Positions 3,574 to 62,809 of a stretch of DNA of 64,000 bases are shown piece after piece. The DNA lies in assembly GCF_006345805.1 (NCBI RefSeq), contig NW_021833061.1:62001-126000 (forward strand). The letters are read 5' to 3'. The stretch is from Octopus sinensis. Lineage: Eukaryota. The position numbers and the translations under genes are program-made. The notes under the pieces were generated by a model. It saw only the letters and a program-made list of their open reading frames with translations. It was not told the DNA's origin and did not search any database. The stretch's first letter is position 1; every line of letters begins with the position of its first letter.

Positions 3574-6500
3574 TTATTTTGAACTGCCGGCGCATAAGAT
3601 GGCCTGGCAGTTCCCTCGGACGATCGCCAACGAGACTCTTTGGAAAAGATGACGAGTCTCGTTGGGATCCTTGTTTCGTCTGGCAATCTTCGACTCCAGC
3701 CGACGAAGGAAAGAAAGCGATTCTGGGCCGATGACCCCGGATGTCTCCACGGCTACTGGCGCAAAAATGTGGTTTCTGGCCAGGTACGAGTATTTTCTTG
3801 TTTTTGTGACCTCCGCATGTCTTGCCGCTGAGCCGGGCTCAGCAACTGAAGAGATCAGGTTATGCGGGGAGAATGTGTCGGAGCATGTCGCATCCCAGAT
3901 GAGGCATTTCCCGTGATCGAAGGGAAATGTTGTCATGCCATCTGGGCGCTTTCCATCTCCGCGATCCAACCCGACTGGTTCCAGCACATTAGGGAATCCC
4001 GCAGATGCCAGGGCGCGGCTCACCACATCATTAAGCCCAGAGTGTCGAGGGAAACGTCCAGCGCTACGCCGGCAGGATAGCGGGTGCAGTCCTAGGGTGT
4101 CAATCATCTGGCCGCAGCGGCATTGATGTTCACGGCAGATGTTTAATCCCAAGCGCAGAGAGACTGCGATGCGGAGGCATTCGTTATCCAGTAATGTCCC
4201 GACTGATACCATTGGGATAGCTGTCAGCCAGGCTCCCGAATACTCTTGGGACCCAGCAAGCAGGCAGCTCAGGCGGTTTTGATCAAGTTTACACTTGAGG
4301 AGGAAAAACTTGTGGTCCGAATAAATTCCGTCCCACTGCCGCTGTTTGGTCGAATCATCAGGAACTTTGAGACCATTAGCGGACCAGCATCTGACAGCCG
4401 AAGAGAACTCAGTGTCCACGGGGGATTCAATAGCGGATTGGAGAATCTCGTGGACCGGAGAGCTGGTGGCGTGAACAGAGGAAAGAAATCCTGGCAGGGA
4501 AAGATCGGCGGCAGAGCGCACACCGATGCCACCGTGGCTAACCGGGAGGATTGCCTGCTCCCAGCCGAGGTCATCAAACGGGGCATTACAAAATGCTTCG
4601 AGGCATGCCCTGAGGGCACGGTCGAAGCTGAAGAGGCCCACGTGATTTGTAAAACAGGGGGCACTTCGGAGGGTGAACATTAACTTGGGGATCGCAAAGC
4701 AATTTCTCAATAGAAATAAAGCCGCATGGGAATCAATTGTCGTGAGCTTACTGGACATAGATATGAGATTCGAGGTTTTTTCGGACAGAGTTTGATCCAC
4801 TCCAGTGTTGAATATGGGGGAGCCCAAAATCTTGAGATTCGATGGCGTGGTGACTTGAATGTTCGATAAAAACGAGTTGAAGGAACGAAGAATATCGGAA
4901 AAATGGTGCGGGTCGTAACTGATGTTTATGATTTCAGATTTATTGGAATTGACTTCGAGACCAATGGCGTGCAATGAAGGGATTATGATTCTCAGGTCAT
5001 CAAGAACGGATTCAGATGTACCACCTATGGTGGCGTCGTCCAAGTACCAAACGTTGAATTTGGATGATACATTCCTGGCAACGTTATCCATAGCCAGAGC
5101 GAAAAGGAGAGGGCCCAAAGGGTCATCTTGCTGTACTCCATTACTGGACGGGATTTTCTGATTACCAGCGACAAGGAGGCTGGGCTGGCCGTAGGCCAAC
5201 GCGATGAGACGGGAGATTGCTGGACAGCGACGGGTAGCGGATTCGAAAAAAGTGTCACGACGCACACAGTTGAAAGCATTAGCCAAGTCTATCTTGATAA
5301 GAAGACAAGGCTTGTCTTGACGATCTTGAGAGGCAATCACAAACTTTCTCGTGGCGTGGACTGCTGCTTCGCAGCCACCCCGAACTCCTACGCCGAGTTG
5401 TATTGGGCGTAATTCGGACCCCAGCAATTTGATGGCTTGTCTGCAAGCTACCTTCGACGCCAGACGGCGGAAGAGGCAACCCACGGCGATGGGACGGACA
5501 CCGCCTTCCTTTTTCCTCAGGGCAGTGAGATTAGCGGCAAAAAATAGGTCGCGGGCATACTCGGAGATTTCTCCGTTCAAAATTCGGTTCGTAAGAGCCG
5601 TTAGGGACGATAGGAGGCGCTGACCGGCTTCACAAGTTTGGGGAGAGAGCATGTCTTTGACGTGTCCGGGCCGGAGGCCGTCTATACCGCCACAGCTACC
5701 AGTTGAAAGAGAATTAATGGCATCGAGGACTTTCTCATCTGAGGCATGTGAGATTGGAAGGTCAGAATGGGTGATAAGGGGCCGTTGGTCGTCTGGAGGA
5801 TTGGGGTGCTTTGCTTTTAGTTCTGTAAGGATTTGGGGAGTTATTTCGAGGGCCTTGGAATCAGATGCCAGTACTCGCACAGCGCCGGCAACGTTTCCTT
5901 CTAGTAGTTGGGCGTTTACACGTTCACGTAGACGTATGGCGTCACGGTTAATAGCCTCGTCGTTTTGTGGGACGCGGGGCTGGTGCGTCTGGTTCTTCCG
6001 TTGGGCCTTCCCTGTGGCACCTAGCCAACTAGAGAAATCCGAGGGACACGGCATGTAGGCCAATATGTTAGCCTTAAATCGCGACGAAGTAGAAATGGGA
6101 TGGATGTTATGGCCTCTGGACTGTTTATGGGTGCCTTCTTTAGGGAGACCGAGAGCCATTATGCCAAAACAGAAAAAATGGTTCCAGCTGGATGGGTCGT
6201 TAAAAGAAAGCGCTTTGTTGATAACGGATGATAAAGACTCGGCCGAGAGAATGCGCGCAGCCTTAGGTATTTTGACTGGGATAGTACGGACCCTTTTGGC
6301 TCGGGAAACCGACAAGAGGAAATCTTTCACTGATAGGATGGGTGTAATTGGTTGGGAATTATTGGAATCGGAAAGAATTTTGGAAGATACCGGCCGCGAA
6401 CCGCGGGCAAGAGGGTGGCATGAGGGGCAGGTCCATTTGGACAAGGTTGAAGCAGCCAATTTAGAGATTCCAGCACAGGAAAGATGAAAGAAGCTTTTGC

Positions 6501-6588
6501 AGGAGGAACACAGGCAGCCGTTCTTCCTCAGGTTGCTTAAGTTGCACGAAGAGCATAGGAGAGACTTTTTAGAGAAAGGTAGTACCAT
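3574..6588 (-). mobile_element. CRE-clade non-LTR retrotransposon with an intact 1004-aa ORF (PHD finger, RT, restriction-like endonuclease)
   Basis: N-terminal C4HC3 finger; RT motifs RPIAVG, DLANAFN, GVQQDDPLGP, YLDD; RLE region CRCG..HPLSC, RH..LND, RPDG, WDATC, K..KY, QRVSLAIVRGN. Confidence 0.93.
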
Positions 6589-16742: not shown

Positions 16743-19414
16743 TTAGAATTGTTCCAAATTAACTTCCGTTTTCTAGCTTTATGAAAAAAAGTACTTTTTT
16801 GGTAACACGCTTCTTCCGCTTAGGACGTGATTTGGATGGAGAACTCTCTTCCTGTCCCTTACAAAATAATATTAATATCACTAACATCTGGGAGGTCAAA
16901 CACGTTTGAAACATGGGGAACATGTTCACTTGGTACTCTGTCGACGTCCTTCCCTTTCTCTCTTTTTTTTTTTTTTTTATCTTTGTCGGCATAAAATCGT
17001 CTGGATTGGCCAATTTCACTAAAAGTTTATGAAATATTAAATTACAGGATGGCAGGACGGGATTCCCAGCCTCGCTCTAATTAAATAACACACATACAGT
17101 TTTACATCAATTTCAGGAATTTGTTTTGGGGAGATCTCATCTTTGACTGGCATGAACTTATTCAATATTCGTCTTTCACTCTTCTCACTGTGCTTCTTGT
17201 TAATCCAGTTATGCAAATCAAGTCTAGCAATTTCGAATGAACACTACCCATTAGGGACAGGCAATTTTCTTTGGGCTCCAGGAGCAACTGGATTTAGTTC
17301 TTGAGAGAAAATTGGTTTCCAACAGTTAACAACGTCCTCGATAGGAAAGTCAGCGTAAAGCATTTCCAATAATTCAACAAGAAGACAAGCCTACGAATCA
17401 AATGCACTATTAAAACGCGTTCTTGAACTTCGACATGCTGACTCTGTTTAAAGAAGATAAGAATATTATTCCATTGAGTGAGGGAAATGGAAAGGATAGA
17501 ACTATGACCAGATTGGCACACTAATTCGATGACGAGACGAGTAATGGCCTGGACACAAGAGGCCTCGACAAACCCAGGTCGAGTTGGAGTAATTGAAGGA
17601 CATAGTTTCTCAACATGAGTGAGATTTTGAATGAGTGAGAGAATGTCCTTTACGTACCTTTGAAAATGAAAATGAACGACACACTGTGAGTATTGGGAAA
17701 CTATCCACGCAGCAGCAGACAAGACGTAAACATTTTCCCCGTGAAGAACAAGAGAAGAGTGCACCAAGTTGTCAATGAGGATAATCTTTAATAATAAGAG
17801 CAAACAAACCATTTGTTGAACTATGAACTCCCTGACTGATTTGACGCGAACTGCGACAGTCAAAAGTTGTTCCACAATGAGTGAAGAGTTGTGGTCACTC
17901 TGAAAGGAAGCAAGGTGGATAAGAGTGGCAACATACCTAAAATGGACTATCGGTGTCATACCACTCAAAGTTGGAAATATTCTCAAAGTTATTATCCTTG
18001 CAAATTTGTATTATAGTGTAGATGAGTTTACCCGAGTATTCTCCCTCATATAATGTCAGTCCCTTCTTTAAATATTCGACTGACATCATGAGATTGTCTC
18101 TGTCCACCTGCAATGTCAGGATATGTCCACCAATCGACGAATAAGCGACAGGGCTCTGATTCTGATGGACTGATCATGTTCGTGGAGACAGTTTGTGATT
18201 CGCTGATGGAAAGGAAGGAGAGCACTGTTCTGAGGAACACGAGACATGATGAGCAGTCCGAGGTACCTCACTGAAATCAAAGAGTGGGCATACGGTTAGG
18301 ATCGTTGTCGTCGACGAAGTGTGCTAGTCTTTGAAGACAATACTAAAAAGTGACTAAACAAGACAACAGTGGTTCCTTGTTGGTGAGTGTTGCTTTGCAC
18401 TATGAATGAAATTATCATGCCAAACCAATAGCGAGAATGCACTCAAGAACAAGCGAAGGTGAATTATGGCTAGAATAGTCATATCATCCTACCTTTTGAC
18501 AGAATTGAGGAGAGGGTCGTACAATTTCTTGATCAACCGAGGCTCGACTGTCAGAAGAGAAGAAAACTGGAATAATAAGGGAATGCCACCAATTTGATCA
18601 GTTTTATGTGAATCCAGTTATGTGAAGGGTCTTTAAGCAAGTCGAACAGAGAGGGTGCCATCACAACATAGTCAGCAGGCTTCCACTTGGCCAACTCGCA
18701 TATCAAGCACACTGTGGCCGTCCTCACCCCCGAGTCCTCGTGTTTGAGCAGATTTTGCAGAGTCGGGAATGCCTGTTTGACGGAAAATGGATATTTCTGA
18801 AACATTCGGTGGAGGACGAGAACAGCCCGTTGGCGGACGACCTGACTTGTGGAGGAGGATATCTGCTCGAAATAGGGAAATACCACTGTCATGACATCAT
18901 CAAATAGAATATTGGCCATATCTTGTGTGGCATAGCTGGATATCGAATGGAGGGCCCAGTTGATTATCAGGTGGTTACGGTTGTGCAAATCCTGGATAAG
19001 ACACGTAGAATACCTTCTTTAGTAGATTGGTGGTGAGGACAATCATTTCTATTCCCTCGTAGAAAATGAGAGAACCACACAAATATCCGATTTTCTATGT
19101 TAAACATATCGAATTACCTTTATTGCGAGTTTCTCAGAACTCATGACCTCGATAACATTAAAAGCACACCAGCTCACGTTGTATCCCAGCATTTGAAGCT
19201 ACCAATAATGCACATCCCCAACATATAAGAGTTTGTTCAGGGCATTGGCTTTGGTTTCTATTTTTGTGCTTTTTAATTCTTGGCGTGCCTCGTCAATGCA
19301 CTTGGAAATGAATGCATCCTGGTCATCAGCCGCGCGAATGCCTTTGATCATTTTCTGAGTGTTCATTTCTAGTATTGACCCGAGTGTCTTTTTCACTGTG
19401 GACTTGACTGACAT
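16743..19414 (-). CDS. AP3D1: AP-3 adaptor complex delta subunit, many micro-introns; 3' end approximate
   Basis: KMIKGIRA..FISKCIDEARQELKS....KANALNKLLY; VRQRA.L.LHRMFQKYP; EDSGVRTATVCLICELA; NWIHIKLIKL. Confidence 0.88.
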
Positions 19415-21948: not shown

Positions 21949-23856
21949 TGTCACCGGTTTTTGCTGGGACCCGGCATCTGCTAGGACCGCAAGCGTATTT
22001 TCAAATAAAAAATATTGAAAATAGTTTATTAACAGTAATAAACACATATTTATTAATTATTTTTAAAAAAGAATATTACTTTTATAAAATTAAACTGTCA
22101 CGTGAAAAATGGGTCTACTGGTTTTGACTAGAGATACTTTGTCAAAAATCAAAGAATACAAAGAATCCTAGATTTGGATGAAGTTTTTGATAAGAAGGAG
22201 AGATATAAAGTCAAACAACATGCAGAAACCTTTTCTTTTGCTGATGGAAAAGCTTATATACGAAGAAATGGCCTAAATCTACGATTTTTTTGTATTGAAG
22301 ACGCAGAACTAAAATTACTAATGATTGAAGTATTGGTTGTCATCTAAAAATAGTCCGAGCATAATTCTAATCTTGTTGATCTGCGCCGATATGTGGAAGT
22401 GAATGATTCAAATTCTTGGGTATACTTTCAGAATTGTAATTTATAGGTACTTGTACTTATTGATTCTTTTTCTAAATTTGGAGTTGTGGAGCTAGCCAAA
22501 AATAAACCTGGTGCTGAGATTTCTTCGTTATTACAAAATATTTTTACATAATTGGCCCCCCAGTCATTCTACAAACCGATAACGGGAGGGAATTTATGAA
22601 TTCCTATGTAAATGCAAATTGCGAAAAAAATGAAAATAAAACAAATTTGTGGAAGACCCAGAGCACCTTGGATTCAAGGCCAGGTTGAAAGGTAACCTAC
22701 AGCAAATAAATTATCAAACTTTTTAGATTTAATCAATCTATCAAAAGGTGGATTCATCTACAAGTAGTTCTAATAGAACTTTTGGCGTCTATAAAGATAT
22801 TATTAAAGAATTGTTTACGACTATAATCGTTCACGACATGCCACAACAAAGCATTTCCTTTCAATATCTTTATGGGAGTAAGAGGCAATTATGCACCAAG
22901 TGGTGAAGAAATGGAAGCTCTCTGCGCGTTTAATGGAGAAGATGCTGATGCTGAAATTCAATTTGTTGAAAATGAAGTAACTCATGAGGAAAATATTGCA
23001 AAAATTTGTTATCAACATACGAGAATCTAACGAAAGCAGGAGAAAAAATGAAAAACAAACGGAAATGGAAATTCGACGAAAACGACATTAAGTTTGTTTA
23101 TCACGTGTTATAATGCGGATTTAGGTGGGGGATAATGTTCTATTACGGCAGGATATTGATGCTAATCCGCAGAATAGAAATTATCCATTATACGATCAAA
23201 TTGATACAAAAAAATATAAAGTTATTGCGCGAGAAAATATGAATTTTGATATTGAAGATGAAGAAGGATTTGTCATAAAAGGAACAAATATTGCGAGACT
23301 TTATAAAATTGATTAAAAAATAAGGCTTTGTTTATAAAAAAAAAATAAGGCTTGTGTTAAAATAAGGGTTAAGGATAGGTTGGGGTTAGGGATAAGGTTG
23401 GGGTTAGGGATAGGGTTAGGGATAAGGTTGGGGTTAGGGATAGGGTTAGGGATAAGGTTGGGGTTAGGGATAGGGTTAGGGATAAAGTCGAAGTTAGCTT
23501 AGTTTTTGAGATAAAATTAAGATTTTTTCAGGCCAAAGATAAAAATGTTGTATTTTTATCACGGAATAATACTTTTTGTGTTTTTTATTTAATTTTTATT
23601 TAAAAAAAAATATAAATAGTTTAATTTTTTTGGACTGGTAACCCAAATATTAATTAAATATTTAAAGTTCAACGGCGTTAATAACGAATGTTGGGGTATG
23701 TTGGTTTTGTACCAAAAAGAATTTTCAGTAAATTGGAAACTATCAGCATTTTAGGGTTAAACTTTAACTATTTAATAATTTTAGATATAAATAAAGCGAT
23801 TTAGTCGATTTTTAGGGCGGTCAAGGAGATGCCGGTCCCAGCAAAAACCGGTGACA
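21949..23856 (+). mobile_element. Ginger2/TDD-like DNA transposon A with a degenerate retroviral-type integrase
   Basis: ~30-bp TIRs TGTCACCGGTTTTTGCTGGGACC; 5-bp TSD attaa; integrase remnants IDSFSKF and QTDNGREF. Confidence 0.8.
23362..23486 (+). repeat. Telomere-like (TTAGGG-variant) higher-order repeat with a 30-nt unit
   Basis: gggttagggatagggttagggataaggttg repeated exactly at 23401-23460, with partial copies on either side. Confidence 0.9.
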
Positions 23857-28263: not shown

Positions 28264-31200
28264 GAATATAATCTGTTGATAAGTTGTTGTGGTGTTGTGC
28301 ATGTCCGTTCCTAATGATATGAGGAAATCGAATCCTAGGGGCCTTCCTGCGAAAAAGGATAAAAATAACATAACAAGTGCAGGAGTGTCGTCTCTGGGGC
28401 TGGATAACAGCACAAGGACTAGTATTCATGACAATCCAATTGCTGGGAATCCTACTATCCCAACTAACTTGCATTCCCTTTCGGCCATTATCGATGATGC
28501 TATTTGTGTTTCTGAAGCTGAGTGGGTGTCTCAGATTGTTTATGCCACGAAGCAAAGAATTGGGAGGATACCAAGAGGTGGATGGAACCTTATCCGTGAG
28601 AAGTTTAATTCAAATTCTCGAAGAGTGCAAGTCTCAGTCAACTCAAAGGAATGGTTAACCAATGAGAGTGGATAATAATTATGGAAGCAATTGCCATCAG
28701 AAGCAATTTCTTGAGAGCTCAGAAATTTCCACTTTTAGAAAGTGTCTAGAAGAGTTGAATATACAAATTAAGAATATTGAATCGATTCCAAGGGATTCAC
28801 GTAAACCAACTCCAAAAATTCAAAATAAATATTTGAAAACTGATATATTGACAGGATTGAATTCGGCGATATATTATATTACGAAAGATAATCATCCTAA
28901 TGATATCAATAGCATTTCTGATATTCTATATGCTGCTCAATGTGCGTATTTATCTCTAACCATGAGAGACAAAGCACAGAGCACATGGGTAGAAAATATT
29001 GAAAAGAAAATTTCAAAATTATCTGCAGAATTGGAAATTGTTAATTCCCATTCCAATCAAACACTACCTCCATCTGAAAAGCAAAAGGTAATGGATGTTC
29101 TCTGTCGCTATGGGTATAAGAAAACTAAGAAAGGTGAGCTGTCGAGGATTCAGATATTATTGCAAGACCTGATTAGGATTAACAATAAGAAAATAGAAGT
29201 TCATAATTCAAGGAAGCAATTTCGTAAGGATAATCAGTGCTTTGAATTAAATCGAAAAAGATTCTATCGAGACTTAACAAAGAAAGAGGAAGTGACGCTG
29301 TATGGATTTGATGATGAAGAATGTGTCTCTTTTTGGCAAAAAGTCTGGAGCGAGAGAAATGAGAGGCCTCAATTTTATGACGTTGTTGGAAAACGAACTA
29401 CTTGTGCTGAACATATGCTTCCAGAGTTTACGGAAGTTTTTTGGAAATGTTATTAAGTATCTTCCTGACTGGAAGGCATGTGGATGTGATGGGATATATA
29501 ACTTTTTCATTAAGAAGATGGAGTCATTACATGGATTTCTGTGTCACGAGATAACCCGAATAATTAATGGAGAGTACATGCCTGAAAGTTGGTTTTACAC
29601 TGGAATAACATATTTGATTCCTAAAAAAGATGATTGTGAGACCCCGAAGGACTTACGTCCTATAACGTGTATGCCGACATTGTATAAACTTGTCACCAAA
29701 TGTGTTAATGTAAAACTGGCTGATTTTGTCGAGGCATTTGGCCTAATTTCAGACAACCAACTTGGAACGAGGAAGTATTGTCAAGGCGCCAAGGAGCAAG
29801 CTCTCATTAACCAATGTTTGAACAAGGAGTACGGGAATGGCCTTTATTCTGCTTGGGTCGATGTGAAAAAAGCATATGACTCAGTTGATCATGATTTTTT
29901 GTTTCACGTTTTGGATTGTTCTGGAATCCCGCTTTGGATCGTAAACTTTGTGAAGAGCGTAGTTAAGAAGTGGGCAGTAAAGCTGCATATGGAAGGTAGA
30001 AGAATTGGATCAGTGAAGTTAAACCGAGGAATTTTACAGGGAGACTCATTGTCTCCTTTACTATTTGTTATGGTATTAGATCCTCTAAGCAGGATCCTTA
30101 ATTCCGTGTTTCCAAAACTTGAAATTAACCAGGAAGATCCCAATATGTTAACATATTCTACTAATCATTTGCTATTTATTGACGATCTAAAAATATTGCT
30201 CTCAAACAAGACACTTTACTCAAAATGATGGAAGCTGTTAACGGATTTTTAAAATTGTTGGTTTGGAGATGAATTCAGAAAAATCAGCGTCTAATTTGGA
30301 ATCATTATCATGTTGTAAGACTATTGACGGAATCAATGGATATCGGTATTTGGGTGTACTTGAAGATGGTGGAAGCAATGTTCTTAAGAATAGAGTTATG
30401 GACTCTATCTTTGAGAATGTTAAGAAGGATAACTATGCTATCGAAAACAAAACTCAACTCTGTGAATCTGTTTCGTGCTATAAATGAATATGCATTGTCA
30501 CTATATAATTATTATATTGGGCTAATCAATATTGAACCTTCTGAATTTGATGATATTGACAGACAAATACGGCAATTGCTTACGTCGCTCAGATTACATC
30601 TCAAACCTGCAAATAAGAGAGACTGTATTTAAACCGGAAGGCTCTTGGAAGAGGCTTTCATCAGTTACTTTCAAAAGTGAACTAATGCTCTTTCAGTTCC
30701 TTACGAGTCTGGAAAATATGTCAACTATATGCTTACGGAGGGCGGGGATTCTGCGTGTAATTAAAATGAATAAATGGCATTTGGCTATGATCGCAGGATT
30801 TCTATCCTCCAAATATGCAATTATTGATAAGAAGAGTATTACTATGGAGTCTCTAAAGTTCCAGTCAGATACAATATTTACAAAAGAAAATTAGTTCTAA
30901 AGCACTACATTCTGTGCTTTTCAAATGTGTGGATGAACCTAATGTTGATTTACCTGCATCCTCAGAATGGCTATCTAATGGAAATAATGGGCCACGAAGC
31001 GAAGCATTGTATTGTCTTTTGCAAGATCGAAACTTGTTCTTTGCATCCGCTGACTCATTATGCAATCATTGTAAGAAAAGCAAGAAAACTGTTGACCACA
31101 TGGCTACTCAGTGTGGTAAAATGCTCAACAGTGATTATCTCCGGAGACACAACGAAGTTGTGAAGTGTATTCACCTTAACTTGTGCCGAATGTATGGACT

Positions 31201-38359: not shown

Positions 38360-41300
38360 AAATCAAATAAAGATCTTTCATTCCAGTAGAACAAAAAACA
38401 GCCCATGCATCGCCAGTTCAATAAAAATGAGGGCAGCCAGTTTCTTCAAACTGGGTACCATTAACTTTGTCTGGGTGCACAATCAATGCAGCTCGTGTAA
38501 TACCTTTTTACATCGTCTCCCAATAGAAGCTGTCCCATCGAAACTAGATTCCAAGGAGCACCTTCCCATAGAACTGTATGCAACGAACTTAATAAAAACG
38601 AATGTTCTTTCCCTTTCCTTGGACCATTGAGAGACCTAGCGAATATATATAATCTCATACAGTTTTTTCAGCACAACTAAGCAGCCTCGTCACTACGTTC
38701 TTTGAGTTCACGCATCGTTTTTTGGGGCGCCAGTAGACCCGTCAGTACTATAAATATTCCCAAGATCTAAAATCCACAAAAAAGTCACCACTTGAAGGGA
38801 TATCCCGTTCATTACCCTTCGGTATGGTTTCAGTAGGTATATCCTCCCTTTTATTACGAATATCAGGACGTTGGGGAGGCTTAGGATTAACGTTAGGAAG
38901 TTGTTCAGTTTTGGAATGGAAATATGGCATGTTCAAGTCAACAAAATGTGAATTTTTATCGTCACTTTCATCAAAATCTATTAGGAAGCTGGCATTGTTA
39001 TTTTTGGACAGCTTAGGAGTTTGATGAGTCGAATCGGCTGAGAAAAAGTCGCTTAATAGGTCATTATCGGCCACTTTTTCTAGAAAATGATAGGACACAG
39101 AATAAACCTGATTGATGAGCAAAAGAAAGATCAAAAAGTACATCAGATGTGGGTTGGTTTTCGGATTGAATTGGTGTCTTCGTTGATGGTCTTTCAGGTG
39201 GAATGCCACTGATGAGATTCGATGCAAATTCGGATGGAATTGGTGTCTTCGTTGATGGTCTCTCAGGTGGAATGCCACTGATGAGATTCGATGCAAATTC
39301 GGATATTTCTATAGTAATTTGACAGGAAATACTAAATCGTTGGGAAATGGTGACAATTTCATTCATGGAAGTGGTAAGGGCAGCAGGGAAAAGAGAAGCT
39401 ACTGACAAGTCCCCCCATCGTTCGTCGATAAAAGCAAGTCCTACATCGACAGGAGTCATATTGAAAATAATCTCACAGTCGTAATCACCTTTGTTAACAT
39501 CGAACTTAGTCCTAAAAATAAGAAACCAAGACTGCCTGTTAAAATGATGGAATGTTTTGTCCCCATTGAGTTGGCAAGTGCTGAATGAAAGAGACAAAAC
39601 AAGATTCATCTACGACAATAAAATACTTCCAAGCACATTTCGCTGAGATATTTCGAACAACTGAAGTGTTATATTTCCTCGGATTGATATACGAGGACAA
39701 AAATCCTGAAGAGGAACATATGAATCATTCCCAGGGACGGCTTGTCTGTCATTAACAAACAGTCGGCCATAGAACCCTTCTCTACAAATAGGCGATAGTA
39801 GCACCTTGCATTCTTAACTATAACCTGGGAAAGATGCCAGTCAGAGTAGACACTTAGAACTGGAGCATCCCGAATTATCATTTGAGTGTAATTTAATAGT
39901 CTGACGTAATTAAACAATGATACGCAGTTTCCAATGCATTCATAGAAACCAATCCCTTCTTGTGGGATACATATTTGTCCGACACTTCCAAACTGTCAAA
40001 TAGACGACCAAACAGCAATAGACCACACAAGAAAAAATGAGCAGAAGAGTCGTCAATCTACAATTAACAAAAAATATGACTTTTGCACACACAACACATA
40101 TGGCAGTTGGGGAAGATGCCATACGTTTGTAGACATACGAAAGAACGTTGAGAGTGCTGTGAAGTGACTCCCCAGTACGTTGATACCAGACGACCTCGGC
40201 CAACTACAAATAATTGAACCCTCCGACATTTGTCAATTTATGTGCTGTTTTGGGAAAAACCACAAATATGACATCCCCGTTTTTCTTAAGCTGTCTTACA
40301 ATCTCTTCACTCTGATGCAACGCCTGCTTATTCATTTCACGGGGCGATAGTGCTATCTTGGGTTAAAAACGGAATACAAATCAGTCTCGAGGTAATAAAT
40401 TTCTTTTCTAATGAGTGTTGATCTGCAAAATAATTCTCAACAACGGGTCTCTCTAATGGAGGAGAGGCACAAGTGAGAAAAGAGGGGGGTCTTGTGAGGT
40501 CGATCTTTAATTGGTTAAAGTGGGACCAGATCTGTTGAATAGAAAACCGACGTTGTGGGTCAGGCACAAGAATGCATTCTAAGTTGAGAAAAACAAGTAC
40601 CAATAAGTCTTGAAAACGGAGATGCATGAGGAAAATTATACGAGGCCTGAACAATGGCAAGTATAGACTGGTCTGCAAAGGGATGTTGACCAAAGCAGAG
40701 GCAGTAGAGAATACAACCGACCGCCTGGATACAAAGATATGAATACAAACCCAAATGTCCTGTTCGACTCCAAGAGTGTGCCTCATGTAAAGATCTACCA
40801 TTTCAGGTGCCCGATATGCCTGAGTGGTACAATTTTTGATCTGCGGGTAATGATTGGCATGTACCTCTTCCTCAAGACGCGTGATCTGGTCGACTGACCA
40901 ATCACTGACAACATATATTTCGTTCGTCGCACTCCCAAAATCACACAATTTAATTTCCCCATCAGCAGAGATTAGAAAGTTCTCCATCTGCACATGTCAT
41001 AAAACGATACCTTCAAATCTCTGTGAATGACGGGGGGAGATGCTGAATGGAGTGCGTCTACTGCACGGAGAACACGAACAAAAATATATCCAATCTCTTC
41101 GAGAGTGAGATTTGCATGGGCATTGAGAGCAGCCAAGAGCGTGCCCCCTAAAATAAGCGAGCGACGAATTGATACCCGTGCATAATTCAGTGACGATAAA
41201 TGCATGTGTCAAACCACTATTAACCTTCATCTGAGTAGAACCAATAAAGCGCACAATATTACGGGACGATTGGAATTTGCTCTAAAAATATCAAGTAAGT

Positions 41301-42289: not shown

Positions 42290-43620
42290 TGATCGAGAAG
42301 ACTATGCTCCTCAGGATCGCAATAAAGATTTTTTGGAACAAGCATTACTTCTCCCGTCGTCCTCTGGAGATCAGATCTCCGATTCTCCCGACGAGATCCA
42401 GAGATTTGTGCGGTCATTGCTCCGGACGATTCAGAGGAGATCGGGGAAAAGGATCAAGTTTTCCGTCAAGTTAGAGTATTTCGAAATTTTAAGTTCTCCA
42501 GCCTTTATAGCGGCTGACTTGTTATAATATGTTTGCAAGATCTCTCAACAAACTCTGAATGAATAAATGATATATTTAATTTGCTGGTCAGAGAAATGCC
42601 ATTAATCTTCTTAAAGAAACTGTTATTTTTAGACTACTAACGTGCAACTGCGTTAATAGGATATAACAGAGTAAAACGACACTGATACCAAAACAGGGTA
42701 AAACGACACTGGTAGGAGCGAACTATTGGCCAATTAGCCTCATCTGTGCTTTCTCTAAAACAGGGGTTGGCAGAATTTGCCTTCGTGGGCCAAAATTTTA
42801 TTTTGTATGCGATCCCGGCCAAACAAGAAAAAATCCTTATCGGACGCAGAAATAAGGATATACAAAAATCCTCTTGACTGAAACAGAGGATCTCGTTTCG
42901 TTTGCAATCATGAGCAGTAACGCACAAACTATCTGTTTTGCCGAAAACTGACCGTTCCAGGGAAACGCTTGCAGATTTATTAGTTAAAAATGATTACAAG
43001 GAATTGTACGTGTGATATCATCTTTTTTACAACTCAAATTATAAAAAAATGTTGATTACTTTTAGTAATTTTGTTCGAGAACAATGGAAAAGATTGTCTT
43101 TAACAGACTTTCTGATTATGTGGAATCACAAATTTGCTTTCACCCGTACAATGAGGATTCTGCTAAGAAGGTGTACAGGAAACTGTTTAAAGGAGTTAGA
43201 GCATCAACAATCCCGTGCTTACAGAAACAATGACTGGGTAACTGTGGTGTGCCCGGACCTCGCAAAAGCTTTCGATACCTGGACCTACTTGGAAGAGTTA
43301 TCAGAGTTTGTAGAATTTAGAAGGGTCAATTTTTTCAATCTCCTTCTGGCGGACATTCCTCTACAGCTTGTATGTACTGGAAAACTCATCATATATGCTG
43401 ATGACATCTTTATCATGGATACCTCCAAAAAATTTTACAGTTTTGAAGACGACATACATTGCCATGTTAAAGAAGTTGACAGTAAAGAAGGGCTTGATCC
43501 TAGCACCTGAGAAGACACCATGTCCTGGTTCGGGACGGAGAAGAGTGACTATTTTATCGAACAGTTGGAAAGCACAAGACATTTTGCATTGAAACTGGCT
43601 TACAGAGTACAACTTGACTA
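42290..43620 (+). mobile_element. Degenerate LINE RT fragment
   Basis: IPKQGK..NYWPISLIC, PDLAKAFD and LIIYADDIFI. Confidence 0.65.
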
Positions 43621-43870: not shown

Positions 43871-45067
43871 ATGGCTCTTTTAGAACATTATATATCTGAA
43901 AACAAATTTGAATTCACAGAATTGCTTGACGAGAGTTTGTTCAACTTTTGCAGTCTCCCCAAAATTATAATAATTGGAGACGAAGGGTATTTAAACAACA
44001 TTATTTAGATGTGGGAAAACATCATTCCTGAACTACTTATTAGGCTTTAAAGAATCAATTCCCAAAGCAACTCGAACCATAGAAGTTTTTGGTAGGACTT
44101 GTTTATAAAATGTGGACTTATCTATGGGTTCGTTCTTCAACGTACAAATATTGGATACTCCGGGACTGAACACCAAATGGATTGGGATGGACAAAAATAA
44201 TAAAAATTGGTGCAAACTTTTGGACAATTGTTTAAACGTGCTGTGCGTCGCAGACCTGAGCGTATTTTTACCTCTGACCGAAATAGTCACGGATGCCCGG
44301 TGGCTTGTCTTCAATAGCACATTTTATAACTTGTGCTTCAATCATTAATCAGAATTTGAATTTCACCATCGTCGTTCACAAACATGACCTAAGTATCAAC
44401 AATCCGTTTGCGGTTCATATAAACCAAGTCAAAACACATCTTGAGATTCTCATTCCTACCAATAAATTGCCAAAAGAAATCAAGTTTTGTTGATTTTTTT
44501 AGATTTGCAGATATGTCAGTACAAGTATATTCGACATGTCCATTCTAATTGCTTTTTCGAAAATTATACTTCCTTACGTACCACTTCAAAATACTTTAGA
44601 AAAGATCCTCGGGGACTTTATTTCCGTAGTTTATTTTGATGACCCCTATAGCACTCTAAACTTGAGAATGGAGTCATTGTCGACACTCTCACGCGAGTTT
44701 TAATCGCTGCTCAACCAAAAACTCTTAATTTGAATGAATATGATTTCTTTGCCAAAGTGTTGGAACGTTTTAAAAATATCCATTCTGCCATCAATTGGTT
44801 ATTTGTTTTGTTTCGAGAATTTAGGGACCCATTAAATAATTCTGGAAATAAAGAGTTTTCTCCTATACATTCCACTATAAATTTTCACGATTACACAGTC
44901 TGTTACAGTAAACTGACACCGAAATTGTCGTTGGTATTTCGCGGCGATCGACTTTTTGAAGGTAATTAAACCCTAATAGCTGTGTAGGAGTTTATGAGTA
45001 TAACCTTCATTTATTCCAGAAACTGGTAGTTGAAATAATCTCTGAATATGAGAAAACTCAATTATAA
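43871..45067 (+). CDS. RRAGC: Divergent Rag GTPase of the RagC/D (Gtr2) type; in-frame TAA at 44106-44108 is unexplained
   Basis: Spliced path: PKIIIIGDEGCGKTS; DLSMGSFFNVQILDTPGL (RagC: DISNSSFVNFQIWDFPGQ); NLNFTIVVHKHD (RagC: DMNFEVFIHKVD); TSIFDMSILIAFSK (RagC: TSIYDHSIFEAFSK); YEYNLHLFQK (RagC: IDYNFHCFRK). Confidence 0.75.
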
Positions 45068-45455: not shown

Positions 45456-47128
45456 TCAGACCTCAACTGTACACTTGACAAGAAATGAGGCAAATTCGAG
45501 ATTGTCCCAATAGCACAAATGAGAAGTGAAAAACCGAGAAAACCCAAAGCTACCTTCATAGAGTGCAAAATCGAGTCTATGCTCCAGTCCTCTCAATAAG
45601 GCACTGAAAGTACCTTCCGGTAGAGGATTGAACTCCTCTCCATCGACCGAGTCAGAAAACACTTGGGTGAACCCAGCAATGGCCGAGAGCAAAGACCACC
45701 GTCGATACCATGGAGTTGAGTCGTCCTGAATCACCGATTCAAACGAATATCGGGGAAAGCGACGGAATTCCGGTCTACTGGACATAGTCGACAAATTGAC
45801 GGGTTCCACATTGCGGAACTCCCGGCAGAACATTGGCTCGAGTCGATAGGCCTGGACTGAAAGGGGAAGAGAACCATAAAGTCGCTGGGGAAAAATATGT
45901 TAAAGAGACGGAAAGAACGGTTGCCACAGTGAGGAAATATGTCCTCCACTGTGGATTTGTCACGAATCGAAAAGCCTCTGAGCATAAGGAACACAGCAAG
46001 AGGGGATCCAATCATGAAGAGGTTACTGAAGTGGATGTCGAGGGAATGAGACAAAACCAGGCTACGATCTCCACACGTGCTCTGATTAGTAATAAGATCA
46101 TAGACAATGACAGATCCTGGAATGAGAAGAGTGGACAAACCAAGTGAGTGTGCCACAATGGAGACTTGAGAGACTTCCCTGTGGTAGTCCAAAAAAAGAG
46201 AGTGCAGTCTTTTGAGTTCGTCGGCCAGTTTGGAAATAATCTAGGATAGGAAAGAGAGATAACCTTATGTCTGAAATGTGCACTACTGTAGTACAGCACA
46301 TCAAGAAGGGAGTTGTTGATGAAGTTCCTAATTCGAATGTTAGCATTAGGCATGATCGCATCAAGTGTCTCTGCAAATGACAGCCCAAACACAACTTTCT
46401 CCCAACTCAACCGACCGCCAGTTGATAGGAATAAACTCAATGTTGCCCTCCTTGTGTTCGGAGTGCAAATACTCCTTTATGTTCTTCCGCAGTCTCCAAT
46501 ACTACAACCACACAACCTGAGACAACACTGTGTCGAATTGGCATGATCCAATGACTGAGCAATCCCCGGGACGATGAAAACAAGGTGAGATACGTTCTTC
46601 TGTGTGGCGTCCGTACGTGCCAATTTGTAGTAACCTCTCACCACTCGGGAGGAGGAGTCTGGAAATAGAGGGGTCCTCCACCTGTGAGGCCGATTTTCTG
46701 CATTATGGATGTAACTAATGGGGGAGACTTGGCTGACACGACTACACCCCCCATACTGTCCCACACCACCATGTAGTCCTCCAATTCCAGCACTGTGTCT
46801 GAGGACAAAACAAGATTGTGATGAGCCTCGATTCGATCGGCCAACCACTCGGGGACGGGCTGGTTACTGGGGGAGTAGAACCAAACTCCACGGATAACCG
46901 CCACAGTCAACTCTGAGAAATTTAGCACTTAAATCTGCCTTTATCGTAAATCGGCCTGCACTTTCGATCGCTCACGTCGACAATGAACATTCCATTCCGA
47001 ACTGAAATCTGGTCAGGGGACGAAGCACGGAATGCTCTTTCCAAATTGACAGTGTCGTAACTTGTAAAGTGGCGATAAGAGCCATTGTCGGCAAAGAACC
47101 AGCGAACACGACATAACTCGAGGTCCAT
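45456..47128 (-). CDS. DDHD-domain phospholipase A1 (DDHD1/2, SEC23IP family)
   Basis: VRWFF..VIRGVWF; HLVFIVPGI; LLDVLYYSS; lipase motif VAHSLG; LFMIGSPLAVFLMLRG; TSHLCYWDN. Confidence 0.9.
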
Positions 47129-47483: not shown

Positions 47484-48965
47484 ATGTCGTTGTTCCTCCA
47501 GTTTATTGATACTGAGCGAAGGAAGGTGTTCTACCCTAAAGACGACCAGACTGCACTGGAAGCCAAGCGAAACGCCGTGAAATCTTTTCTGTCAGTGCCA
47601 ATCGAGTTCGAACGAGTGAGATATTTCTGTCACGTGCAGTTCATACTGTTCGGACTTCTCCAATGCCTGGACATATTTCTCTACATTTTCACATTCATGC
47701 CCATCCGCTGTGTCTGCTCCCTCACAGGACTGGTGTTGTATGACCCTCCTCTGACCACAGATACCGACGAGGACTGGATGCGGCCGAGAGAAGCGACCTT
47801 TGTAAGATGTGTGTGCTTTTGCTCACATGTCTGTTTCTGGGGATTATCGACCTGAATGTGCTTTACCACCTCATTCGGTCGCAAAATGTGATAAAACTGT
47901 TCATCTTCTTTAACATGATGGAGGTATGTCTATCTGTCATGAGGTGGGGGACAAACTACTCTGCTCCATTGGGAGTGACATCATCGACAGTGCAATGGCC
48001 TCCTGCGTCGACGGGGTCTGTGGAGTGTTCGACGTGGTCACCCTCCTCATCTACATGTGTACGTCCCCTCTCTATGTCAGTCCTCCACTCCTTCCTTGTC
48101 CTCTTGCAGGCGACTGTCCTTCATGTGGCCTTCAACTCCCACAGTGCAGAACTGCTGACCATCATCATGTCCAACAATGTGGGTGAGGGGGGTCATTCGT
48201 AGTTCATCGAAATCAAGACCAACGTGTTTAGAGTGTTTACTAAGGATACTCACTTTACTCTCGCCTGCTGGGATGTCCGGGAACGATTCCACCTCGCTGT
48301 CCTCCTCACGGTTGTGTCCGTCAGAAACCTGTCCGACGTGGGCTGGAATTTTGGTATTGGTGCTTTTTGGACCTTCCTAGTTCACCTCGCCGACCTCATC
48401 CCTTTCATTTTAGTGGCTTTCGTGGTGGAATGTCTTGTAGACTGGATAAAACACTGTTTTGTGGCTCGTATATCTGGCCTGCACTACACTGTATTTGCTT
48501 CCTATCATTCGTAGAACTACTTTTCTTTTAAGTGCCGTTTGGCCTTCGATCTTATCAACTCTCGCCAACGACGGGTACCTTACGTCTGTCATTTCAGGCC
48601 ACTTCCGACTACAGTGATATTGTCTCCCGGAATATGAACTTTCTCCCTCTCGCCCTTGCCGCACTTCTTCTTCGGACTGTCTTCCCTCTTGTCCATTTCG
48701 ACGCCGGAAATGTCATCATTATTGTCTTGTTGTTCGTCTGGTATTGCACGTGATTTACTGTAGTGTCGTTCTCACCAAGTTGTCGACCAGTATTTACATT
48801 GTTGGGAAGGGTTGTATATACCTTGACCAATTCGCCAGTCCTGCCTACTCTTCCAAATCCGTCCGCAAGTCGGATCCGGAAATAAAAGAGTCTCCCCCTA
48901 TCAAAATTCGTTCCAAGTCTACTGTGGATTGTGACATTAAACCAGAATATATATACCCTGCCTGA
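47484..48965 (+). CDS. TAPT1: Transmembrane anterior-posterior transformation protein 1 (TAPT1/EMP65 family)
   Basis: FGLLQCLDIFLYIFTFMPIR; LYHLIRSQNVIKLFIFFNMME; LLTIIMSNNF.EIK..VF; DVRERFHL; LVDWIKHCF. Confidence 0.9.
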
Positions 48966-59245: not shown

Positions 59246-62200
59246 AATTAGTATTGTTGTTGTGGTGTGTGCATGTACGTTTCCAAGCAGTTAAGGAAAA
59301 CGAAACCTACGGGCCTTCCTGCAAATAAAAAGAACTTAAAAAAGACAGGACCGTCGCCTATGGGACCTCACAATGCCACAAGAGCTAATGGTGTTAAAGA
59401 AGATCTTGTTGGTGATGCTGCCAAAACTAACTTGCATTCTCTTTCTGCGATCATCGGAAATGTCAATGGTGTCTCTGAAGGCGAATGGGTGTCTCAGATT
59501 GCCCTTGCCGCGAAGCAAAGACTTGGAAGGATGCCAAGAGGTGGTTGGAACCTTGTCCTGGAGAAGTTCAATGAGAAGTACTCGGCAAAGTGCTCCAGTT
59601 TATGCCAACTAAAGAGCATGGCTAGACGGAATAACAATGTGCAAGGGAGATGCGACTCTTCCAGAGTGCAAGATGATGTGGACGTAGAAATTTCCAGTTT
59701 CAGAAAGAATTGCCTAGAGGAACTCAAATTCCAAATTGGGAAAGTTCAGTCTATTCAGAGAGACTCTCGAAAGCCAACTCCAAAGGTGCAACGAAGGATG
59801 GTAAAAACTGATATCCTGGCTGGATTAAATTCTGCAATTTATCATATTACAAAAGATGATCCGCCCCAAGATATTAATCAAATTACCGATATTCTATATG
59901 CTGCACAGTGTGCTTATTTGGCCTTAACTACGAAAGCCAGACCACAGAGCACATGGTTGGAAAACACGGAAAGAAAAATCTCTAAATTAGCAGATGAAAT
60001 TGACACAGTTCGTTCCTTCTCCAAACAAACCTTGCCTCAGGCAGAAAAGCAAAAGGCAATGGATGTTCTCTGCCGCTACGGATATAAGAAGTCTAAGAAG
60101 GGGGAGCTAACCAGAATTGAGACTCTATTGAATGATCTAATTAGAATCAAAAAGAAACAGATATCTATCCATTCCTCGAGGAAAAATTTCCGGAAAGACA
60201 ATGCGTGTTTTGAATTAAACCGCAGAAGATTTTATCGAAACTTATCTTCGAGCAACGAAGCCACCCTGTATGGGTTTGGTGATGGTGAGTGCTTATCATT
60301 TTGGGAAGATGTCTGGAGCAAGAAAAATATGGGGCCCGTAGTTTATGATTTTGTGGGTGTGAGGTGTACTGGCGGTGAAACCATGCGACCTCAATTCACA
60401 AGTGATTTTATTATGGATATGCTCAAATATGCACCTGACTGGAAGGCATGCGGATGCGACGGAACGTATAACTTTTTCTTAAAGAAGATGGATTCTTTGC
60501 ATGGGTTTCTGTGTAAAGAGATAGTCCGAATAATTAATGGAGAGTACACGCCTGATAGCTGGTTTTACACTGGCGTAACTTACTTGATCCTAAAAAAAGT
60601 GAGTGTGAGACCCCGAAGGACTTACGCCCTATAACGTGTATGCCAACTTTGTATAAACTTGTCACCAAATGTGTTAATGCCAAACTGGCCGATTTCATCG
60701 AGGCATTTGGCTTAATCTCAGATAATCAGCTTGGGACGAGGAAGCAATGTCAAGGCGCCAAAGAGCAAGCCCTCATTAACCAATGCTTAAATAAGGAGTA
60801 TGGAAATGGCCTCTATTCTGCTTGGGTCGATGTGAAGAAGGCATTTGACTCAGTTGATCACGAGTTCTTGTTCCACGTATTGGATTGCTCTGGAATACCA
60901 CATTGGATTGTCAGCTTTGTAAAGAACATAGTCAAGAAGTGGACAGTAAACTTACATATCGATGGGAAAAGAATTGGGAAAGTAAAGTTAAGCCGGGGAA
61001 TACTCCAAGGAGATTCATTGTCCCCGCTGCTATTCGTTATGGCGATGGATCCCCTAAGCAGGATGCTTAACTCCATGTTTCCCAAACTCGAAATTAGTCG
61101 GGAAGATCCCAATATGTTGACATACTCCACCAATCATTTCTTCTTTATTGACGATCTGAAAATAGTTGCCCTCAAAGAAGATGTGTTAGTCAAAATGATG
61201 GAGGCTGTTAATGGATTTTTTGAAAGTGTCGGCCTAGAGATGAATTCCGAAAAATCAGCATCTAATGTGGAATCTTTATCATGCTGTGAGACTGTCGATG
61301 GAATCAACGGATATCGCTACTTGGGTGTACTTGAAGATGGCGGAAGTAATGTTCTCAAGAATAAAGTTATGGACTCCATATTGGAGAATGTCAAGAAGAG
61401 GATAACTATGTTGTCAAAAACAAACCTGAATGCTGTAAATTTGTTTCGTGGAATCAATGAATATGCATTATCCCTATATAATTATTATATTGGGCTAATC
61501 AATATTGAACCTTACGAATTTGATGAGATTGACCAACAAATACGCCGATTACTTACGACTCTCAAGTTACACCTCCAGCCTGCAAATAAGGAGAGGTTGT
61601 ATTTGGACCGCAAGACCCTTGGAAGAGGACTTGCCTCAATTCTTTCAAAAGCGAATTAATGCTCTTCCAGTTTCTTAAAAGTTGGAAAAACAGTCGACTA
61701 CCTGTCTGCGGAGGTCGGGTATTCTGCGAGTAATAAAAGGAAAAAAATGGCACTTAGCCACAATCGCAGAATTTCTTGTCTCCAAATATGCAGCTGTCGG
61801 CAGGGAAAATCTGACCATTGAGTTACTGAAGGACGCACAAAGGAAACTCTTGCTTAACCGAATTAACAGTAAATCACTACACTCGGTGATGTTCAAATGT
61901 ATGGAGGAATCAGATGTCGACATATCTACTTCTTCGCAATGGCTATCGAAAGGGAACAATGGTCCACGAAGCGAAGCATTGTACTGTCTTTTGCAAGATA
62001 GGAATTTGTTCTTTGCATACACGGGATCACTATGCGTCCACTGCAAAAAAAGCAGGCAGACTGTTGACCATCTAGCCACGCGGTGTGGTAGGATGCTAAA
62101 CAGTGATTATCTCCGAAGACACAACGAAGTGGTAAAGTGTATTCATCTCCACTTGTGTCGAATGTATGGAATAAAACGAAGCAGGAAATTGAAAGGACAT

Positions 62201-62809
62201 TCAGTCGTGTCAACAATGTCGACCCAAAATGTCGAAATCAGAGTTGACACTTCAATTATGACTGAAACAAAGGTTCAATTCAATAAACCTGATATCTTCG
62301 TTTATGACAAGAGGAAAAGAGAAATTCATTTAATCGAAGTGGGAGTTACCTCGCAAGACCGTTTAAAGCAAGTTGAAGTGGAGAAATTTCACAAATATGA
62401 CCTGCTTGCAAACGAACTGTCGGTTCTCTATGAAGCAAAAGTGAAGATTATTCCAATTGTCTTGACATGGGATGGAGTTGTCTCAAAGTTCTTTAAAAGT
62501 CATATGGACAAGTTATCCATTGAAGAAGGAACGAGGACATACATCCAGTCGGTTGTGCTGAAGAGGACTCTAGAGAGTATGCTTATTGAACACAGACATG
62601 GGATGAAGGTAGACAACGAGGAGTACGCCTCTGCCGCCAATCAACTTGAGGACACTCAGTTGAACAATTACTTTGACGCAGAAATGGAAAATGATGAGAA
62701 TTTTGTTGCAAACTCTTCTTTCAAGCGAAGAAGAGAAATCACTGACGATCTGGATTCTTAAATAATTTAAGATAGAATTTACATAATTATTTTTATTAAC
62801 ATTTTTTCA
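59246..62809 (+). mobile_element. Full-length R4/Dong-like RLE non-LTR retrotransposon, copy 2, with two frameshifts (~60590, ~61650)
   Basis: ORFs 59267-60634, 60640-61659 and 61682-62761 join into one RT-RLE protein homologous to copy 1; candidate 11-bp TSD gtttacttttc. Confidence 0.9.

Follow-up and report, generated by a model that had tools for sequence, protein, structure and literature searches.

The 64-kb window (all 64,000 nucleotides of the stretch analyzed here) carries on its plus strand, at 43871-45067, a gene for a Rag GTPase of the RagC/D (Gtr2) type and not of the RagA/B type, in which a leucine occupies the position of the catalytic switch II glutamine. The gene is a fast-evolving, structurally complete natural variant of RagC/D with the residue of the laboratory GTP-locked allele. 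Both the gene and the substitution are real; the product and its function are predicted from the DNA.

Gene structure and family assignment

The gene extends from an ATG at 43871 to a stop TAA at 45065-45067 and comprises eight exons and seven introns, removal of all of which yields a product of 339 residues. Six of the introns are of the GT..AG type and measure 22, 25, 27, 26, 27 and 26 nt, in agreement with the range of 22-27 nt given in an earlier note on this DNA. The intron count is corrected from six to seven by the segment 44092-44115, which starts with GT and ends with GG.

Exon 1 (43871-43986) contains the start codon, the N-terminal extension, strand β1 and the first half of the P-loop, GDEG, with the codon of Gly39 split GG|A. 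Intron 1 (43987-44008, 22 nt, GTATTT...TTTAG, phase 2) lies within the P-loop, at the position and in the phase seen in the RagC/D genes of Lingula, Fasciola and Hydractinia. Exon 2 (44009-44091) continues with the P-loop residues CGKTS, helix 1 and switch I, followed by the candidate intron 2 (44092-44115, 24 nt, GTAGGACTTGTTTATAAAATGTGG, phase 1), which splits an Asp codon, and by exon 3 (44116-44261) with strands β2-β3 and switch II. Intron 3 (44262-44286, 25 nt, phase 0) interrupts VADLS|SRM, corresponding to VIDAQ|DDY of other RagC/D proteins. The G4 motif is located in exon 4 (44287-44483), which is separated by intron 4 (44484-44510, 27 nt, phase 2) from exon 5 (44511-44625) with G5, AFSK and the linker toward the C-terminal domain. 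Intron 5 (44626-44651, 26 nt, phase 0; DFIS|HSK, corresponding to IFIS|NSG) precedes exon 6 (44652-44797), the first part of the roadblock C-terminal domain, whose strands continue after intron 6 (44798-44824, 27 nt, phase 2) in exon 7 (44825-44961). Behind intron 7 (44962-44987, 26 nt, phase 1; LFE G|VYEYN, corresponding to ERKG|LIDYN), exon 8 (44988-45067) encodes the C-terminal helix and the stop.

All nucleotide-binding motifs, G1 to G5, are kept in the spliced translation. The P-loop (G1, 43976-44024, split by intron 1) reads GDEGCGKTS, and G2 is represented by Thr60 within KAT at 44064-44072 when intron 2 is removed. Switch II (G3) at 44154-44168 is GAT ACT CCG GGA CTG, i.e., DTPGL, G4 is HKHD at 44377-44388, and G5 is STSIFD at 44518-44535, with AFSK at 44551-44562 completing the stretch STSIFD...AFSK (44518-44562). 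The catalytic Gln after DxPG is replaced by Leu (codon CTG, 44166-44168), which the HMMER alignment sets against Q120 in the DFPGQ motif of human RagC. The earlier note had described DTPGL in place of DFPGQ, the replacement of LRRS by DEGC in the P-loop, and the motifs G1, G3, G4 and TSIxDxSI..AFSK, and each of these descriptions was borne out.

The Pfam family Gtr1_RagA (PF04670) matched residues 31-253 with 75.9 bits (gathering cut-off 22, E 4.2e-21). When all PDB sequences were searched by phmmer, human RagC (2.3e-19) and yeast Gtr2 (9e-12) were retrieved, with RagA (0.03) and Gtr1 (0.033) at far weaker E-values. A scan of 1.84 billion cluster representatives returned 127 relatives, all of the RagC/Gtr2 type, the best of them 27-30% identical, and no match was obtained when the spliced draft served as query in a word-indexed protein search. 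Identity to the other RagC/D proteins compared was 23-27%; by contrast, Fasciola RagD is 53-57% identical to most animal RagC/D proteins among the matches listed. AlphaFold and Foldseek showed a two-domain layout with an N-terminal G domain and a C-terminal roadblock dimerization domain. The top Foldseek matches were the RagC chains 6ulg_G, 6wj2_G and 8dhb_A, taken from FLCN-FNIP2-Rag-Ragulator and related complexes, with TM values of 0.75-0.86 over about 320 columns at full length; the query was the first AlphaFold model, which still contained eight intron-encoded residues (pLDDT 83.2). Pfam, phmmer and the fold match thus confirm the earlier suggestion that the protein is collinear with RagC/Gtr2 through the roadblock C-terminus. 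All testable features of the RagC/D-Gtr2 subfamily were found with the exception of the catalytic Gln.

Human RagC and RagD (RRAGC, RRAGD) and yeast Gtr2 belong to the same Pfam family as the window protein and share with it the architecture of G and roadblock domains, the DxPG-type switch II that is RagC/D-like, HKxD and TSI(F/Y)D...AFSK, and among them RagC is closest by both sequence and fold. In comparison to these proteins, the window protein has GDEGC instead of GLRRS in the P-loop and Leu instead of Gln120, at 23-27% identity. Its N-terminal extension is shorter, and the distance from the P-loop to switch I is reduced by 4-6 residues. Within the 64-kb window we found no second Rag-like sequence and no gene for a RagA/B-type partner, Ragulator, Raptor or FLCN.

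The in-frame TAA and the 24-nt intron

A single in-frame TAA is located at 44106-44108, within 44092-44115, and the reading frame is open only once this GT..GG segment is removed. The segment starts with GTA like the other introns and ends in TGG, so that GG (44114-44115) stands in place of the 3' AG. As the earlier note had remarked, the TAA has no obvious AG-terminated intron around it: no GT..AG pair of less than 60 nt spans it, and the next AG (44252-44253) lies 137 nt downstream. Canonical splicing can therefore not remove the TAA from the sequence as it stands.

To place the segment, the annotated RagC/D genes of Fasciola hepatica (L001), a primate (L002), Sinanodonta (L003), Lingula anatina (L004), Hydractinia (L005) and Macrostomum (L006) were mapped in one protein alignment. 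Given as alignment column and phase, the introns of the window gene are (134,2), (168,1), (217,0), (288,2), (327,0), (375,2) and (426,1); those of Lingula RagC and Fasciola RagD are (134,2), (168,1), (217,0), (288,2), (327,0), (376,2) and (426,1). Position and phase match for all seven in both species, with a shift of one alignment column in one case. The segment 44092-44115 is the (168,1) intron of the window gene, the phase-1 intron before D(I/V/L)S, which is also present in Macrostomum and Sinanodonta. It is absent from the primate RagD gene, which has five introns in common with the window gene; the Hydractinia gene instead has an intron at (179,0). The Asp codon at this boundary is split G|AC in the window gene and in Fasciola, and G|AT in Lingula. 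Lingula RagC and Fasciola RagD share the seven-intron layout, including the P-loop intron, but differ from the window gene in that they carry Gln and His, respectively, after DFPG, keep GLRRSGKSS, and have introns that end in AG.

In Fasciola RagD, the two introns flanking the exon for the second P-loop half and switch I are 40 and 38 nt long (L001:1166-1205 and L001:1299-1336), and the other five measure 2-19 kb. The annotated protein of Sinanodonta woodiana (L003, P0071) runs from MGHRR|Y directly to DVTNSS, without the exon that should supply switch I and the remainder of the P-loop; an annotation error is the probable cause. Switch II of this protein is NVPGI.

Removal of the 24 nt joins ...KATRTIEVF|DLSMGSFFNVQILDTPGL... 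and sets the distance from the switch I Thr to the Asp of DxxG to 19 residues, the modal spacing of the family. AlphaFold runs at equal alignment depth gave a mean pLDDT of 83.2 and a pTM of 0.82 for the unspliced form, and 87.0 and 0.85 for the spliced form. For residues 61-70, the pLDDT rose from about 49 to 91. Strand β2, absent in the unspliced model, appeared in the spliced one, and the number of residues with a pLDDT below 50 fell from 21 to 0. The family HMM, on the other hand, scored the unspliced form at 139.1 bits and the form without 44092-44115 at 134.2 bits, and of the in-frame deletions of 15-36 nt around the TAA, each of which was scored, none exceeded 136.8 bits, leaving the unspliced form best. 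The HMM does not favor removal of 44092-44115 because the spliced form requires a gap of six residues ahead of switch I. We gave more weight to the fold result and to the shared position and phase of the intron than to the HMM scores, and on this combination of alignment and modeling the TAA is largely explained as intronic.

The GT..GG segment has a canonical equivalent in a neighboring DUF747/TAPT1-like gene (47484-48753, plus strand), where a 24-nt GT..AG intron at 48179-48202 contains an in-frame TAG. An intron length that is a multiple of three, with a stop inside, is normal in this DNA. The earlier note had taken the TAA as a possible sign of a decaying copy or a base error; this caveat is resolved insofar as the stop lies in an intron of conserved position and not in an exon, and it stands insofar as the 3' AG is missing. 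The GG end may represent a base error or minor allele, a fresh splice-site lesion, or a tolerated non-canonical site.

Three other ways of dealing with the TAA were considered. Canonical introns at 44092-44253 or 44101-44253 (162 and 153 nt, both in frame) would remove it, but were rejected because they would delete strands β2-β3 and switch II, i.e., clearly homologous coding sequence. An alternative genetic code with TAA as a sense codon was rejected since the gene itself terminates in TAA and the sole internal TAA is accounted for by the intron. Read-through of the stop at 44106-44108, where the TAA is followed by A, is presumably unlikely.

Genome context

With a GC content of about 38%, introns of 22-27 nt in the Rag gene, about seven introns per gene and several LINE-type reverse-transcriptase ORFs, the window is consistent with DNA from a dicyemid-like spiralian parasite, e.g., Dicyema. 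The genome of Dicyema japonicum has been described with a GC content of 36.7%, 49% repeats and 6.2 introns per gene, and the median intron of Dicyema sp. with 27 bp. Myxobolid cnidarians have similarly short introns; presence of the spiralian (168,1) intron, and not the (179,0) intron of Hydractinia, favors a dicyemid-like spiralian over a myxobolid.

Downstream of the Rag gene, pieces of WWE and DDHD domains are encoded at 45456-47128 on the minus strand; tiny introns seem to divide what resembles a gene for a DDHD-type phospholipase or a SEC23IP-like protein. Just upstream, the ORF 43049-43510 (plus strand) had no Pfam match; inspection by eye showed a YADD-like motif and suggests a fragment of a reverse transcriptase. 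RVT_1 ORFs of non-LTR retroelements are located at 3574-6588 (minus), 28662-30228 (plus) and 59267-62761 (plus). One RVT_1 ORF of 1004 amino acids showed a weak, sub-threshold PHD-finger match, and an exact look-up of this ORF in protein collections returned no match. At 23365-23485 there is an interstitial array of degenerate TTAGGG-like repeats with the unit GGGTTAGGGATAAGGTTG, including three perfect 30-nt copies. Two exon-sized ORFs on the minus strand matched Pfam domains, 17294-17986 with Adaptin_N below threshold (26.5 bits, cut-off 37) and 40337-40993 with the protein kinase domain (36 bits, cut-off 31.7). For the adaptin ORF, no relative with shared 5-mers was found in a collection of 5.8 billion proteins, which points to an organism that is highly divergent or unrepresented.

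The catalytic position in RagC/Gtr2 proteins and the meaning of the leucine

The engineered alleles RagC Q120L, RagD Q121L and Gtr2 Q66L are used as GTP-bound forms and, together with GDP-bound RagA/B, constitute the dominant-negative heterodimer. The characterization of Q120L as the engineered RagC-GTP allele, on which the earlier note had drawn, agrees with the literature. The Leu of the window protein is the same change at the same structural position; in contrast to the engineered alleles it is natural and stands in a highly diverged background.

To see how exceptional such a change is, the residue following xxPG was recorded in the divergent RagC/Gtr2-type representatives (from P0001-P0127, clustered at 50% identity). 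Only 48 of the 93 that align with xxPG have Gln; the other 45 have Asp (11), Gly (9), Ser, Asn or His (5 each), Ala (3), Val (2), or, in one case each, Phe, Met, Glu, Ile and Pro. These fractions are not species frequencies, as clustering at 50% identity over-counts divergent lineages. The Gln-less proteins include Fasciola RagD with His, Dimargaris gtr2 with Ser, a Coemansia protein with Val, a protein of the gregarine Filipodium with Ala, and those of Spongospora and Amorphochlora with Gly. The switch I Thr/Ser is retained in 48/48 non-Gln sequences compared, and the P-loop Lys (G1) and HKxD (G4) in nearly all of the non-Gln rows listed, so that these sequences resemble working nucleotide binders. 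With the Fasciola protein as query, 120 animal RagC/D proteins were retrieved; Gln is present in 100 of them and His in 20. The His group (DFPGH; L001, P0153-P0167, P0170, P0178, P0203, P0204, P0230 and P0264) contains the named trematodes except Clonorchis, cestodes, the free-living flatworm Macrostomum and the molluscs Patella, Solemya, Haliotis and Gigantopelta. Leu was found at this position in none of the about 210 sequences surveyed.

Since Gln is naturally replaced so often, its absence is unexceptional here and need not mean a locked switch. This bears on the proposal, put forward in the earlier note, that amino-acid sensing is rewired in this organism: the Leu itself is upheld, and the step from Leu to rewiring is weakened by the replacement of Gln in about half of the divergent representatives. 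Natural loss of the switch II Gln with retained nucleotide binding is also familiar from other families, e.g., Rap (Thr61), Rnd and RhoH, and for some naturally Gln-less small GTPases the GAP supplies the missing catalytic group. FLCN-FNIP is the GAP of RagC/D, into which FLCN inserts an arginine finger, Arg164; in contrast to the GAPs of such Gln-less GTPases, this finger is all that is described for FLCN. When FLCN-FNIP is lost, it is the MiT/TFE factors that are affected, rather than S6K and 4E-BP1.

The best explanation overall, to which we give about an even chance, is that the gene is the RagC/D orthologue of a spiralian parasite with tiny introns, that the TAA is intronic, and that Leu has taken the place of Gln. 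Provided that the GT..GG intron is removed, without which no product would be made, the predicted protein would keep guanine nucleotide binding, as judged from its complete set of motifs, as well as the dimerization domain. An aliphatic Leu should not be able to position the water molecule, and GTP hydrolysis would then be very poor, as in RagC Q120L and Gtr2 Q66L. Such a protein would be mostly GTP-loaded and act as a constant partner in the Rag dimer, leaving nutrient control to the RagA/B-type subunit alone. This proposal of nucleotide binding, very poor hydrolysis and control through RagA/B only is drawn from the sequence and by analogy to the engineered alleles, and we hold it tentatively, at somewhat less than an even chance.

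The same observations can be read in other ways, of which a dispensable Gln, a disabled locus and base errors are not mutually exclusive. If RagC/Gtr2 subunits do not depend on the switch II Gln and the GAP or another residue drives hydrolysis, Leu would be tolerated, and the nucleotide cycle as well as control of the FLCN/Lst7 type would stay intact. The frequency of other residues in the survey, including His in one-sixth of the animal proteins, and the conserved motifs of the Gln-less sequences speak for this explanation. Yet the change from Gln to Leu is the standard hydrolysis-deficient one in RagC, RagD and Gtr2, the survey contained no Leu and few aliphatic residues, and His, Asp, Asn and Ser can hold a water molecule whereas Leu cannot; taken together, we consider a tolerated Leu possible but somewhat unlikely. 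A comparable, rather low likelihood is assigned to the possibility that the GG end, the Leu codon or both stem from wrong bases in the assembly or from minor alleles of pooled parasites, the true sequence being AG at 44114-44115 and, less likely, CAG at 44166-44168. Each of the two is a single base away from the canonical state, the remainder of the gene is clean, and intron 7 ends in the same context, TGTAG.

That the gene or this allele has recently been disabled, by a change of AG to GG at 44114 with retention of intron 2 and termination of translation at codon 72, appears unlikely to us. The Leu and the odd P-loop would then reflect relaxed constraint in a parasite that is losing the Rag pathway. 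The GG end with no alternative AG within 137 nt, the very low identity to other RagC/D proteins (23-27%) and the strong reduction of dicyemid genomes described in the literature fit this scenario, but the lesion is the only one in 1020 coding bases, where an old pseudogene would carry frameshifts and several stops. The six remaining introns are in the right phase with GT..AG ends, neither the start nor the stop nor any of the nucleotide-binding motifs is damaged, and the spliced product folds in AlphaFold with a pLDDT of 87. Finally, the gene could be a divergent extra paralogue next to a canonical RagC/D with DxPGQ or DxPGH elsewhere in the genome. Its extreme divergence and the fact that 64 kb of the genome were seen would allow for this, but the window contains no other Rag-like sequence and the full ancestral intron set, which shows that the gene is not a retrocopy, is kept; we regard a paralogue as improbable. 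Apart from these considerations, divergence as extreme as 23-27% identity is by itself compatible with relaxed constraint.

Independent of how the Leu is explained, the locus is a clean case, from a genome with tiny introns, of a 24-nt intron at a conserved position that lacks AG at its 3' end. This end represents a splice-site lesion at an early stage or else a non-canonical site. RagC/D-GDP, the product of the FLCN-FNIP GAP, is the state that gives mTORC1 access to MiT/TFE, and Q120L is the standard block of this step. A natural animal RagC/D with Leu, if expressed, would offer a direct opportunity to test whether the nucleotide cycle of RagC is dispensable in vivo. It is doubtful, though worth stating, that we are looking at an animal lineage with a non-hydrolyzing RagC/D and FLCN-independent nutrient control of TORC1 via RagA/B alone, within a family whose switch II Gln is dispensable across many eukaryotes, flatworms and molluscs having His and fungi and protists a variety of residues. 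If this were true, hydrolysis on the RagC/Gtr2 subunit would differ from the Ras paradigm or would often have been abandoned. The survey of the catalytic Gln is probably more broadly useful than the Leu by itself, as it questions how hydrolysis on the RagC/Gtr2 subunit is catalyzed.
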